Origin: Macrostomum lignano | Lineage: Eukaryota | Reading direction: 5' to 3' | Assembly: GCA_002269645.1 (NCBI GenBank) | Contig: NIVC01001458.1 | Span: forward strand, 1 to 64,000 | Length of the DNA stretch: 64,000 bases | Shown: piece by piece, positions 42,401 through 51,400 of the stretch | Layout of the letters: each line of letters begins with the position of its first letter | How positions within the stretch are numbered: position 1 is the first letter of the stretch | Position numbers and translations under genes: made by a program | The notes under the pieces: model-generated | Databases searched by the model: none | Seen by the model: the letters and a program-made list of their open reading frames with translations, nothing else | What the model was told of the DNA's origin: nothing

Positions 42401-45400
42401 GCAGAGGGGGGATCTATGGCAGAGGGGGGATGTATGGCAGAGGGGGATGTATGGCAGAGGGGGGATGTATGGCAGAGGGGGGATGTATGGCAGAGGGGGG
42501 ATGTATGGCGGAGGGGGTATGGCAGAGGGGGGATGTATGGCAGAGGGGGGATGTATAGCAGAGGGGGGATCTATGGCAGAGGGGGGATGTATAGCAGAGG
42601 GGGATGTATGGCAGAGGGGGATCTATGGCAGAGGGGGGATGTATAGCAGAGGGGGGATGTATGGCAGAGGGGGGATCTATGGCAGAGGGGGGATGTATAG
42701 CAGAGGGGGGATGTATGGCAGAGGGGGGATGTATGGCAGAGGGGGGATCTATGGCAGAGGGGGGATGTATAGCAGAGGGGGGATCTATGGCAGAGGGGGG
42801 ATGTATGGCAGAGGGGGATGTATGGCAGAGGGGGGATGTATGGCAGAGGGGGATGTATGGCAGAGGGGGATGTATGGCGGAGGGGGTATGGCAGAGGGGG
42901 GATGTATGGCAGAGGGGGATGTATAGCAGAGGGGGGATCTATGGCAGAGGGGGGATGTATAGCAGAGGGGGGATGTATGGCAGAGGGGGGATCTATGGCA
43001 GAGGGGGGATGTATGGCAGAGGGGGGATGTATGGCAGAGGGAGGATCTATGGCAGAGGGGTATGGCAGAGGGGGGATGTATGGCAGAGGGGGGATGTATG
43101 GCAGAGGGGGGATGTATGGCAGAGGGGTATGGCAGAGGGAGGATCTATGGCAGAGGGGTATGGCAGAGGGGGGATGTATGGCAGAGGGGGGATGTATGGC
43201 AGAGGGGGGATGTATAGCAGAGGGGGGATCTATTTGGGAGTGGATGAGCCATCAGACTGGAAGACAATTCTAGCATTGATTGGACTTAAAACAATGGTGC
43301 ATTTATCAATGAAACATGCTAAATACACGTTTATCTTACTATAAGTAGCAAACTTCAGCTACAATATTTCGTCACTCACCGAGAATTCCCTCCTCCGAGG
43401 CCGCTGTGGCAGCGGCGGGCTTCTCCTCAACCTTCGCAGCCTCCTCGTCCCAGTCGGCCTGATCCTCCGCCTGCTGCTTGCCAGGCGTTGCACCGCCGCT
43501 GCCCGCGGCCCGTCGTCCTTTGACCAGATCCTTGTACTCAGAGATGCGCAGCTTCCGGCCGTCCATGATGCAGGTGCGCTTCGGCCTGGGCCGGTACCGA
43601 TAGTCCGGGTGCTGCTCCATGTGGATCTTGGACAGCCGGGATTGCTCCTCGTAGAACGGCTGCTTTTCCTCCGCCGTCATCGCCTTCCACTTGGCGCCCA
43701 GAATCTTGGAAATATTCGAATTGTGCATGTCTGGACAGGCTTTCAATATTTTTCGACGCTCCTCGCGTGCCCAAACCATGAAGGCGTTCATCGGGCGTTT
43801 CACGTGACTGCCGCCGCTGCCGCCTCCGCCGCTAGTAGCCTCTTTGCTGTCCGGGGCAGTTGCGGAAGTCCCAGTCGAAGGCTTCTCCTGGTTATTGTTG
43901 TTATTATTACTATTATTATTATTGCTCGATGCAGCCTGACGGGATGCGCGCGAAGATTTGCTGCTGGCGCTGGTGTTGCCGTTCTTGGCGCCGTTGGTCT
44001 GGTTGCTAACCGCGGCCTCCTGACTAGCAGCAGAGTTCGCTGTTGCTGCGGGAATCTGCGGCTGCTGCTGTTGCTGCTGCTGAGACTGCGTGAGCTGCTG
44101 CATAGATGCGGTAGTCAGCGCTAGCACAGTTGGCTGCTGCTGTTGCTTGTCCTGCTGATTCTGCTGGGTTAGCAGCTGCGGCTGCTGCTGCTGCTGCGGC
44201 TGCTGCTGTTGCTGCTGCTGCTGCTGCTGCTGCTGCTGCTGCTGCTGCTGTTGCTGGGTCACCTGCGGATGATGCAGCAGCTGGTGCACTGGCTGCACCT
44301 GGACTGTGGCCGGCTGGGAGTACAGCGCCAGAGCCGCATTTGGCAGGGCGACGCCGTGAGCGGCGGCAGCGAAGAGCAGCTGCTGAGTTGTCGGCGTAGC
44401 CTGAGTCACCGCCGGAGATCTGTGATTGTTGAACAAAGCAGTCGCGTTAGTGTTACCCTACTTAAAAAGTAGGCTGCAAAGCGTTTGATTGTCGTAAAAT
44501 GCGAATGCACAAAAATTCTGCGCCCCTTTAAAGCAATATTCAGAGTCATGTGTCTTCAGGTAAAAGACCTGAATCTTGTGTCTTCAGGTAAAAGACCTAA
44601 ATCTTGTGTCTTCAGGTAAAAGACCTAAATCTTGTGTCTTCAGGTAAATGATCTGAATCTTGTGTCTTCAGGTAAATGATCTGAATCTTGTGTCTTCAGG
44701 TAAATGATCTGAATCTTGTGTCTTCAGGTAAAAGACCTGAATCTTGTGTCTTCAGGTAAAAGACCTAAATCTTGTGTCTTCAGGTAAAAGACCTAAATCT
44801 TGTGTCTTCAGGTAAATGATCTGAATCTTGTGTCTTCAGGTAAATGATCTGAATCTTGTGTCTTCAGGTAAATGATCTGAATCTTGTGTCTTCAGGTAAA
44901 AGACCTGAATCTTGTGTCTTCAGGTAAAAGACCTGAATCTTGTGTCTTCAGGTAAAAGACCTGAATCTTATGTCTTCAGGTAAAAGACCTGAATCTTGTG
45001 TCTTCAGGTAAATGATCTGAATCTTGTGTCTTCAGGTAAATGATCTGAATCTTGTGTCTTCAGGTAAATGATCTGAATCTTGTGTCTTCAGGTAAAAGAC
45101 CTGAATCTTGTGTCTTCAGGTAAAAGACCTGAATCTTATGTCTTCAGGTAAAAGACCTGAATCTTGTGTCTTCAGGTAAATGATCTGAATCTTGTGTCTT
45201 CAGGTAAATGATCTGAATCTTGTGTCTTCAGGTAAATGATCTGAATCTTGTGTCTTCAGGTAAATGATCTGAATCTTGTGTCTTCAGGTAAAAGACCTGA
45301 ATCTTGTGTCTTCAGGTAAAAGACCTAAATCTTGTGTCTTCAGGTAAAAGACCTAAATCTTGTGTCTTCAGGTAAATGATCTGAATCTTGTGTCTTCAGG

Positions 45401-48400: not shown

Positions 48401-51400
48401 GCTCAGGGTTTGTGTCTCTTCTCAGCTGTTTTTCTCTTCTCTCCTCGCTCTTCTCTTCCTCATCTCCCTCTCCTCTCTCATCTCCCCTCTCCTCTTTCAT
48501 ATCCCCTATCCTCTTCTCATCTCTCCTGTCCTCTTTCATCTCCCTCCTCTCTCGCATCTCACCTCTCCTTTCTCATCTCCCTCTCCTTTTCTCATCTCTC
48601 TTGTCCTCTTTCATCTCCCTCTCCTCTCGCATCTCCCTCTCCTGTCTCATCTCCCCTCTCCTCTCTTATCTCCCCTCTCCACTCATCTGCCCCTCTCTCT
48701 CTTCTCTCTCTCTCTCTCTTTCTCTCTCTCTCTCTCTCTCTCTCTCTCTCTCTCTCTCTCTCTCTCTCTCTCTCATCTCCCTCTCCTTTCTCGTCTCCCC
48801 TCTCCGCTTCTCATCTCTCCTGTCCTCTTTCATCTCCCTCTCCTCTTCTCATCTCCCCTCTCCTCTATCATATCCTCTCTCCGGCTTGCAATCATGGACT
48901 AGATTCTATATCGTTCCCATAATTTGAACAATTGCCGACCCCTGTTCTACACTGAGGTCTGTTTGTTAAGCTTCGAGGCTCAACTTTGAAAGCCGAACGA
49001 CAGATGGGCAGCGCTTGATTAGAGTAGGTCCGTCGGGCCACCCTCTTTTCTAACTGCAAATGTTGTATATTCTACCCAGGGAGGTTCTCTGCGATTGTCC
49101 CGACCTCCCAACGTTCCCTGAAACAAACTCAACTTTTATTACCATAGAAACTCATTAATATCAGTTTTCAAATAATTTTTCGGCGACCAATTAACATTAT
49201 TGCATCGGTTTGCCTCTATAAAAAATCCACGAACAAAGGATAAACGATTTATTAATCAGAAAACGCTGCACTGCTCTCGGAAGACCAAATTTCGGATTCG
49301 CAGAATGCTCGACTTTTTGGAATTTGACTGCATATTAATAATTCAATATTTTAGCCAGAGAGACTGCCATTCAGCTCCACTTGATGCAGAGTTTCTGTGA
49401 ATGGAATAAACTAGCTTTATCCTGCAACTGGTCCGGGGCGTGCCTGTCTGAGAACTTCAGGCATTTGAGAGAATAAGGGGGCAGACTGCGCTTTAAAGGG
49501 GCGCAGAATTTTTGTGCATTCGCATTTTACGACAATCAAACGCTTTGCAGCCTACTTTTTAAGTAGGGTAACACTAACGCGACTGCTTTGTTCAACAATC
49601 ACAGATCTCCGGCGGTGACTCAGGCTACGCCGACAACTCAGCAGCTGCTCTTCGCTGCCGCCGCTCACGGCGTCGCCCTGCCAAATGCGGCTCTGGCGCT
49701 GTACTCCCAGCCGGCCACAGTCCAGGTGCAGCCAGTGCACCAGCTGCTGCATCATCCGCAGGTGACCCAGCAACAGCAGCAGCAGCAGCAGCAGCAGCAG
49801 CAGCAGCAGCAGCAACAGCAGCAGCCGCAGCAGCAGCAGCAGCCGCAGCTGCTAACCCAGCAGAATCAGCAGGACAAGCAACAGCAGCAGCCAACTGTGC
49901 TAGCGCTGACTACCGCATCTATGCAGCAGCTCACGCAGTCTCAGCAGCAGCAACAGCAGCAGCCGCAGATTCCCGCAGCAACAGCGAACTCTGCTGCTAG
50001 TCAGGAGGCCGCGGTTAGCAACCAGACCAACGGCGCCAAGAACGGCAACACCAGCGCCAGCAGCAAATCTTCGCGCGCATCCCGTCAGGCTGCATCGAGC
50101 AATAATAATAATAGTAATAATAACAACAATAACCAGGAGAAGCCTTCGACTGGGACTTCCGCAACTGCCCCGGACAGCAAAGAGGCTACTAGCGGCGGAG
50201 GCGGCAGCGGCGGCAGTCACGTGAAACGCCCGATGAACGCCTTCATGGTTTGGGCACGCGAGGAGCGTCGAAAAATATTGAAAGCCTGTCCAGACATGCA
50301 CAATTCGAATATTTCGAAGATAGAGGAGGAGAAAGGTGTCCACCAAGTTAGTTTCTCTGTCACCCTCCACTGTCTCTGTCACCCCCACTGCCTCTGTCAC
50401 TCCCCCCACTGCCTCTGTCACTCCCCCCACTGCCTCTGTCACTCCCCCCACTGTCTCTTTCACTACGCCCACTGCCTCTGTCACTCCCCCCACTGTCTCT
50501 GTCACTCCCCTAACTGTCTCTATCACTTCCCCCACTATCTCTGTCACTCCCCCCACTGTCACTGTCACTCCTCACGCGTTTTTTTCACATTCCTTTTAGT
50601 CTCTGTCACTCTCCCCAATAGTCTATTACTTTTATTGTCTTTCATTCTCTTCTTCAGTGTCTGTCACTCTCCCGTGTCTACCACTGTGGCCAGTGTCTGT
50701 CACTCTCCCCTGTCACTCTCAATATCTCACCCTATCTCGTGTATCTGGTTATTACTCTTGTAAACTAGCTCGTATGAATAGAACAATGCACAAAATCCAC
50801 CTGAATGAGTTATTTGAAGCACAGATGTCTTATCAATTTTTTTCGACCTCGTATCTATGGCTCCCTGTGCTCAGTAATAACAATAGGTAGAAACTGCTGA
50901 GCACTCTATTGTCACTAGTTTGATGGGAGCTGATCAAATTGAAGGACTGCGGGAGACTTTAAAACAGACAAACTTGGAAAGATCGCGGCAGATGGTTGAC
51001 TAATTTGTTTCTAAGTTATTTCTATTGTTGTTTCCACTCGAAAATTCAAGTTTGTGGCAATAGCAACTTGGTGTGCGCTAGTTCTGTAACAAAGGAATCT
51101 TCGACACAAAAGGGTACTCAATCGATGAGAGTTCCCATCCCCAATTTTCAAGCAGAAGATAGTCGAAGCCAGCAAAGCACCTCCAGGGATCAGAGTCATT
51201 GTCACTCTGTGCAACCGCGTCATTGTCACTCTGTGCTACCGCGTTATTGTCACTCTGTGCTACCGCGTCATTGTCACTCTGTTGCTACCGCGTCATTGTC
51301 ACTCTGTGCTACCGCGTCATTGTCACTCTGTGCTACCGCGTCATTGTCACTCCGTGCTACCGCGTCATTGTCAGTCTTTTCTGTCTGGCTTTTACACTAT

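Follow-up and report, generated by a model that had tools for sequence, protein, structure and literature searches.

The DNA analyzed here (the window) is a 64,000-nucleotide stretch of Macrostomum lignano, positions 1 to 64,000 of the forward strand of contig NIVC01001458.1 in assembly GCA_002269645.1. It carries on its minus strand a SoxD gene whose first intron holds an 832-bp inverted copy of the gene's own intron 3/exon 4 boundary. Five coding exons of 411, 294, 302, 1040 and 434 nt (2481 nt, 826 amino acids) were reconstructed for this gene, with canonical AG/GT sequences at all borders:

56241–56651, minus strand: SoxD exon 1, with the ATG at 56651 and the donor TTG/GTGAGC
46764–47057, minus strand: SoxD exon 2, encoding polyglutamine (polyQ) and a TPLNLS motif
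46362–46663, minus strand: SoxD exon 3
43380–44419, minus strand: SoxD exon 4, with the HMG box encoded at 43803–43597
39410–39843, minus strand: SoxD exon 5, running through the stop codon, with the exon 4–5 join confirmed by UPI0007A18102

In the GenBank gene table of the contig, a minus-strand entry of 826 residues has the same stop coordinate as our reconstruction, and the GenBank annotation of this assembly, Mlig_3_7, was derived from genome-guided RNA-seq transcripts (PMC5730564). In the 826-residue product, residues 542–610 matched the Pfam HMG_box (E=5.1e-24) and the RPMNAFMVW motif was present, while the best named matches were SOX-5, SOX-6, Sox13 and egl-13 orthologues from many phyla, with 80–88% identity over the HMG region. 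Judged from its predicted protein, the gene is an orthologue of SoxD (the Sox5/6/13, Sox102F group), and the identity and exon/intron map proposed in the initial annotation of this DNA proved correct in every detail. Searches with exon 4 and with the species-specific C-terminus, together with exhaustive representative searches, retrieved a single SoxD protein of M. lignano, UPI0007A18102, which is a partial model of the ML2 era. The 826-residue product and an 803-residue SoxD product from a paralogous contig are listed in the gene positions and were absent from both protein collections searched. A CRAL-TRIO/GOLD gene neighbours SoxD in the window, and the record around it, NIVC01001458.1:20834-45419, agrees with window positions 20834–45419 at every one of 24,586 bases.

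An inverted copy of the intron 3/exon 4 boundary in intron 1

A repeat search of the window identified an inverted repeat with two arms of 832 nt each, separated by 4955 nt. The arms, the spacer and their single point of difference are placed as follows:

43703–44534, minus strand: sense arm (original), running from the last 115 nt of intron 3 (44534–44420) across the 3' splice site into exon 4, of which it takes the first 717 nt (44419–43703)
49490–50321, plus strand (antisense in the minus-strand SoxD pre-mRNA): inverted duplicate, within intron 1 (56240–47058)
44535–49489, minus strand: spacer and would-be RNA hairpin loop of 4955 nt, holding exons 2 and 3 with intron 2 between them, flanked by 2432 nt of intron 1 and by 1827 nt of intron 3, in which a 28-bp minisatellite lies
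50316, no strand assigned: mismatch site, 6 nt from the junction, where the paralogous contig NIVC01000154.1 has the C state

Direct comparison of one arm with the reverse complement of the other showed 831 of 832 positions to be identical without any gap, and both the CAG/CAA (polyQ) and the AAT/AAC (polyasparagine) tracts have equal length in the two arms. The sole mismatch (43708/50316), read in the sense orientation, is a C in the sense copy and a G in the duplicate and is synonymous (TCC/TCG). Past the arm ends, identity over the next 60 bases fell to 11/60 and 14/60, which is the level of chance. Self-BLAST of the whole window returned no other inverted match of at least 80 bp, the only other match being a 65-bp CAG tract. 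The 832-nt match cannot be attributed to chance.

The sense arm contains the exon 4 acceptor (cacag/AT at 44420/44419) and ends in the middle of codon 575, at position 34 of the 69-residue HMG box. The duplicate starts 5919 nt past the exon 1 donor and ends 2432 nt ahead of the exon 2 acceptor; both of its junctions open into non-repeated sequence, with exons 1–5 staying collinear around it. The inverted 832-bp copy that had been proposed, with equal tract lengths and one mismatch at 50316, was borne out by this comparison, and the figures given for its content were exact, namely 115 nt from intron 3, then the acceptor, then 717 nt from exon 4 with the end inside the HMG box.

Genuine structure or assembly artefact

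Mlig_3_7 was assembled from PacBio continuous long reads (CLR) with Canu 1.4, polished by Pilon with Illumina and RNA-seq reads and scaffolded with SSPACE (PMC5730564). In the DV1 genome 93% of read pairs map to multiple places, and several copy-number errors have been documented in Mlig_3_7 (PMC10733133). An inverted 832-bp block could in principle have arisen in such a draft from chimeric PacBio reads, from the Canu layout or from local reassembly by Pilon, an option that the initial annotation had kept open. A CLR draft of a triplicated genome that is more than 50% repetitive, polished with multimapping Illumina and RNA-seq reads, makes this option credible, and mis-represented paralogs are many in this assembly (PMC10733133). 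Near-perfect arms, unstable repeat tracts included, are what a duplicated consensus would be expected to give, and the breakpoints adjoin minisatellites, where read overlaps are least reliable.

However, an artefact would require two independent false junctions 832 bp apart, each leading into unique sequence, in a contig that is otherwise collinear. The arrays next to the breakpoints are built from unrelated units of 28 bp and 21 bp, and a false overlap therefore cannot have come from them. The window contains no Ns, and no second inverted block was found in the roughly 100 kb of assembly covered in total, of which 35 kb belong to two paralogous loci. Local reassembly with Illumina reads would hardly be able to cross the 120-bp CAG tract, and the substitution at 50316 would be atypical of CLR consensus errors, which are mostly indels.

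Missed SMRTbell adapters and fold-back chimeras produce palindromes that have no spacer and mostly sit at contig ends, their inverted arm running on as the reverse complement of the adjoining sequence. The SoxD repeat is like these long-read artefacts in being an identical inverted block in a PacBio CLR/Canu draft, but it differs from them in forming an 832-bp block with two sharp junctions, 50 kb inside a contig. Its layout is also not theirs, given the 4955-nt spacer, the unrelated flanks and a position 44–50 kb inside a contig of 286,145 bp. Taken together, these observations make an artefact unlikely, although a draft of a triplicated genome gives it some room, and the DNA structure is probably real.

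Breakpoints and mode of origin

Minisatellites lie close to two of the breakpoints:

44549–46299, no strand assigned: 28-bp minisatellite, 62.5 copies (1.75 kb), beginning 15 bp from the breakpoint at the intron 3 end of the sense arm, with a 7-bp stem TTCAGGT/ACCTGAA in the unit
50354–50571, no strand assigned: 21-bp minisatellite, 10.6 copies, beginning 32 bp past the HMG-side junction of the duplicate

Of the four breakpoint flanks, two are no more than 32 bp away from the edge of a minisatellite, as close as only 6% of non-array positions are (P ~0.02, post hoc). The window as a whole contains 31 tandem arrays with units of 4–118 bp, mostly intronic or intergenic, which make up 50.0% of its sequence and place it far above the 15% that simple and tandem repeats occupy in the M. 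lignano genome (PMC5730564). The junction on the intron side is blunt. On the HMG side, the duplicate closes with the six bases GAAGAT as opposed to CAAGAT in the source, which may represent either a substitution beside the junction or an imperfect microhomology of five bases out of six; both would fit the junctions left by replicative repair.

Because the copy includes intron sequence and a splice site, it was made at the DNA level. We suggest that 832 bp of DNA from the intron 3/exon 4 boundary was copied in reversed orientation into intron 1, 5 kb away, and that the likely route was a template switch during replication or the repair of a break at the edge of hairpin-prone minisatellites. 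The duplication would then be genuine, young and specific to this gene copy, a product of repeat-driven instability and a mutation as opposed to an evolved device.

Other modes of origin were considered and set aside. Apart from unrelated CT-rich and CAG arrays, nothing else in the window matches the sequence on either side of the duplicate, and neither terminal repeats (TIRs) nor a target-site duplication is visible at the junctions; capture of a gene fragment by a transposon of the Pack-MULE or Helitron type was rejected on the lack of repeated flanks (within the window), TIRs and target-site duplication. A retrocopy is ruled out by the intron sequence that forms part of the copy. Merging by the assembler of an inversion allele with a non-inverted allele would explain the junction at 50321/50322 and leaves the one at 49489/49490 unexplained.

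Several further repeats were recorded in the window. A 118-bp satellite of 61.6 copies with 99% identity occupies 1–7261, the very start of NIVC01001458.1. A (CTAA)n array of about 100 copies (47148–47553) lies in intron 1, starting some 90 bp ahead of the exon 2 acceptor. Upstream of exon 1 there is a (CTAT)n array of about 430 copies (57539–59283). A 395-codon open frame on the plus strand (10997–12181) has a weak Phage_integrase match (E=0.002, below the Pfam cut-off) and may be a Crypton- or DIRS-like remnant.

A paralogous contig and the age of the duplication

The inbred DV1 line has about three paralogous copies of most of its genome, with a single-nucleotide polymorphism (SNP) divergence of about 2.2% (1.1% in coding sequence) and very numerous indels that amount to 36% of the aligned length (PMC10733133). 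The paralog compared here is NIVC01000154.1:1-16108, which aligns with window positions 29136–48861 and carries a paralogous CRAL-TRIO gene together with a SoxD paralog annotated with 803 residues. Exons 2 and 3 of this paralog are identical in protein to those of the window and its exons 4 and 5 are intact. Over the 832 bp of the sense arm, it differs from the window by three SNPs (43711, 43714 and 43990) and by a 39-bp deletion in the polyQ tract of exon 4 (44188–44230), a CAG/CAA length difference of 13 glutamines between the paralogs. The duplicate has the state of the window contig at all four of these sites (4/4). The arm occurs once in the aligned segment of NIVC01000154.1, up to the equivalent of window position 48861. 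The 28-bp array adjoins the same breakpoint base in NIVC01000154.1, and the array is therefore older than the duplication.

The near-identity of the arms had been taken to imply a very recent origin, gene conversion or an assembly artefact; as an argument for recency it turned out weaker than it seems. Because the paralogs themselves differ by only three SNPs over 832 bp, one mismatch between the arms is not proof of extreme youth; with three mismatches expected, the Poisson probability of observing at most one is about 0.2. Polishing by Pilon with multimapping reads could also make the arms alike and erase small differences. By contrast, the polyQ length, which the arms share and which separates the paralogs, points to recency, and would be a better sign of it than the low mismatch count.

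Between paralogs this genome is very unstable in structure, and array lengths, which also differ between the two contigs, are an example. The 17-bp minisatellite of SoxD intron 4 spans 3.3 kb in the window (39895–43226) and about 0.4 kb in NIVC01000154.1 (10388–10787). The 28-bp array of intron 3 is likewise shorter in NIVC01000154.1, so that array length shifts fast between gene copies. A 26-mer common to both arms gave no match in the JGI metagenome contigs.

Elsewhere in the window, a single-exon gene of the ZNF593/zf-C2H2_jaz type (15420–15881, plus strand, 153 amino acids) has an identical product annotated on another paralogous contig, NIVC01001774.1. No annotated gene for this product was found for NIVC01001458.1, where it seems to be unannotated. 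On NIVC01001774.1 a cadherin gene lies about 5–10 kb upstream of the ZNF593-like gene, in the place of the 118-bp satellite, and that contig ends before SoxD.

Predicted RNA duplex and its consequences

Both arms lie within the annotated span of the SoxD gene and on its transcribed strand. Folding computation gave 831 intermolecular pairs and -1878 kcal/mol for the two arms together, compared with -356 and -284 for the arms folded on themselves. In the SoxD pre-mRNA the antisense arm would be transcribed first and the sense arm 4955 nt later, with removal of intron 1 competing with pairing between them. In the unspliced fraction, or in trans with excised intron 1, an 831-bp perfect duplex could then form, burying the exon 4 acceptor together with the first 717 nt of exon 4. 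A duplex of about 830 bp that masks the HMG-exon acceptor, as the initial annotation had proposed, is consistent with the position of both arms in one annotated transcription unit and with the predicted co-fold. The further claim of a self-silencing hairpin is supported no further than as a possibility, given that a normal product of 826 residues is annotated and that about three copies of the gene would buffer its loss.

Several fates of such an RNA can be considered. Skipping from exon 3 to exon 5 (1040 nt skipped) and from exon 1 to exon 5 (1636 nt skipped) both produce frameshifts, as had been predicted and as the exon lengths bear out, and exon skipping would accordingly be expected to mean loss of function. 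Back-splicing of exons 2–3 (46362 to 47057) is geometrically possible, with the upstream arm lying wholly in intron 1 and the downstream arm having 115 of its 832 nt in intron 3 and the rest in exon 4. M. lignano possesses duplicated Dicers, 13 canonical Ago paralogues and four predicted RNA-dependent RNA polymerases (RdRPs) (PMC5594548), and because the host has this machinery, production of small interfering RNAs (siRNAs) is the most plausible of the RNA fates listed. The most likely result would be a drop in the productive output of this gene copy, as exon 4 would be blocked or mis-spliced and the duplex cut into siRNAs by Dicer. Being about 99% identical in exon 4, the remaining SoxD copies would be matched by these siRNAs as well, so that silencing in trans is conceivable; the effect would be partial and buffered by those copies. 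Because a neopolyploid genome holds about three paralogous copies, a damaging mutation in one of them would be easily tolerated.

Provided that the structure is real, we consider a measurable effect at the RNA level to be somewhat on the probable side. The reading that we tentatively prefer, without regarding it as established, is a real, young and copy-specific inverted duplication that probably acts as a partially self-interfering (hypomorphic) allele, buffered by the other copies of the gene.

Several points weigh against this preferred reading. The DNA structure is taken from one draft assembly. The segment of NIVC01000154.1 stops 630 bp before the equivalent of the insertion site, and with two copies compared the four diagnostic differences are unpolarised and do not strictly date the event. 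The annotated product of 826 residues has the length of the exon 1-2-3-4-5 splice, and productive splicing is therefore on record; silencing is not complete, with the reservation that the underlying reads may stem from paralogs. Finally, transcription passes the exon 2 acceptor 2.4 kb ahead of the sense arm, and by general splicing kinetics co-transcriptional removal of intron 1 may pre-empt most of the pairing.

The last two points lead to a second reading, in which the duplication is real but inert at the RNA level, intron 1 being spliced and degraded before exon 4 is made, and the duplicate is a neutral passenger in a 9-kb intron. In its favor, the polymerase reaches the exon 2 acceptor (47058) 2432 nt past the antisense arm, with 2.5 kb still to go before the sense arm; the normal 826-residue product was annotated from RNA-seq-derived transcripts, and intron 1 was already half tandem repeats, a tolerant setting. 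However, a perfect duplex of 831 bp (-1878 kcal/mol) could form even from a minor fraction of unspliced or lariat RNA, inverted repeats with an intron spacer are generally known as a standard trigger of RNA interference (RNAi) in transgenes, and the annotated transcript may derive from paralog reads (93% multimapping). We regard an entirely inert duplication as rather doubtful.

A third reading treats the repeat as an evolved regulatory hairpin, kept by selection or gene conversion, through which SoxD would be tuned by exon skipping, by a circular RNA (circRNA) of exons 2–3, by editing or by endogenous siRNAs (endo-siRNAs); in one version it would serve dosage control after genome multiplication. 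Complementary sequences do flank exons 2–3 as at circRNA loci, the layout resembles an intron-spaced hairpin RNA (hpRNA), the RNAi pathway of the host may include amplification, and gene conversion could explain why the arms are identical despite the polyQ difference between the paralogs. Yet the structure is known from one gene copy only, and youth is the simpler cause of near-identity. The breakpoints look like those of an accident, one falling mid-codon in the HMG box and one at a minisatellite edge, while the products of skipping are frameshifted and would represent loss of function as opposed to regulatory isoforms, and a normal transcript is annotated. An evolved device is very improbable on this evidence.

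We give equally little weight to a stronger form of the silencing idea, in which the locus would be a functioning natural intron-hairpin RNAi construct within its own target gene. Double-stranded RNA (dsRNA) would here be processed by Dicer, perhaps with help from RdRPs, into siRNAs that hold down all three SoxD copies, and the allele would amount to a dominant and newly arisen dosage brake.

The duplicate could also act on the plus strand, where the copied 3' splice site and an open frame would serve as an exon of an antisense transcript, possibly trans-spliced to a spliced leader, encoding a polyQ protein with half an HMG box:

49567–50763, plus strand: open frame from the duplicate (predicted only), with the copied acceptor (49604/49605), exon 4 coding sequence, a truncated HMG box and a Cys/His-rich tail from the 21-bp minisatellite

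This frame of 398 codons runs 147 codons past the junction and keeps positions 1–37 of 69 of the Pfam HMG_box, and about 39% of M. lignano genes are trans-spliced (PMC5730564), which counts in favor of such an exon. By contrast, the frame has no promoter, upstream exon or transcript support, its tail is a mere translation of the 21-bp repeat, and half an HMG box is unlikely to fold. A plus-strand exon is thus scarcely credible and ranks below every other reading considered here.

Implications

If the hairpin is real and active, it would make SoxD a natural case of an animal gene that holds an RNAi trigger aimed at itself and at its homeologs, caught just after birth, and the origin of hairpin-RNA loci, as well as the possible trimming of dosage after polyploidisation, could be followed directly. 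RNAi, transgenesis and regeneration assays are routine in M. lignano. At the DNA level, recombination between the 832-bp arms could invert exons 2–3, a consequence absent from the initial annotation. If the repeat is inert or an artefact, the position is still one to flag in Mlig_3_7 for the design of SoxD RNAi probes, in situ probes and CRISPR guides, because probes from exon 4 match two places in opposite orientations.

Comparison with known systems

Drosophila reportedly has hpRNA loci that yield endo-siRNAs, among them hp-CG4068/esi-2 and, in D. simulans, Nmy and Tmy, which are said to suppress Dox. Like these loci, the SoxD repeat is an inverted duplication of part of a coding gene that arose de novo and appears young, and its RNA would form a long, near-perfect intramolecular dsRNA matching the parent gene. 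The Drosophila loci differ in being separate transcription units with short loops that target another gene in trans, and they are defined by their small RNAs. In SoxD, by contrast, one arm is the target exon itself while its partner occupies an intron of that gene, and a loop 5 kb long with two exons lies between them.

A second parallel is the circular RNA of mouse Sry, which Capel in 1993 and Dubin in 1995 reportedly traced to long inverted repeats flanking the exon. As in Sry and other circRNA loci, internal exons, here those of a Sox-family gene, have reverse-complementary sequences on either side, an arrangement that could join the donor at 46362 with the acceptor at 47057. At circRNA loci, however, both elements lie outside the downstream exon, whereas in SoxD 717 of the 832 nt fall within coding exon 4 and would hide the acceptor that linear splicing requires.

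Natural inverted-repeat silencer alleles are said to occur at the soybean I locus (CHS) and in rice LGC-1, where they reportedly act in trans as dominant silencers of a small gene family. The SoxD repeat shares with these alleles, and with intron-spliced hairpin transgenes, the combination of sense and antisense sequences of several hundred bp around a spliceable spacer, which in SoxD are predicted to fall within one transcript. Those systems differ from it in being of plant origin or engineered, with short spacers and proven siRNAs; SoxD belongs to an animal, and its spacer spans 5 kb. The SoxD repeat belongs to a known kind, that of gene-derived inverted duplications able to form hairpin RNA, and its unusual feature within that kind is that the target exon itself, in the same gene, supplies one arm.

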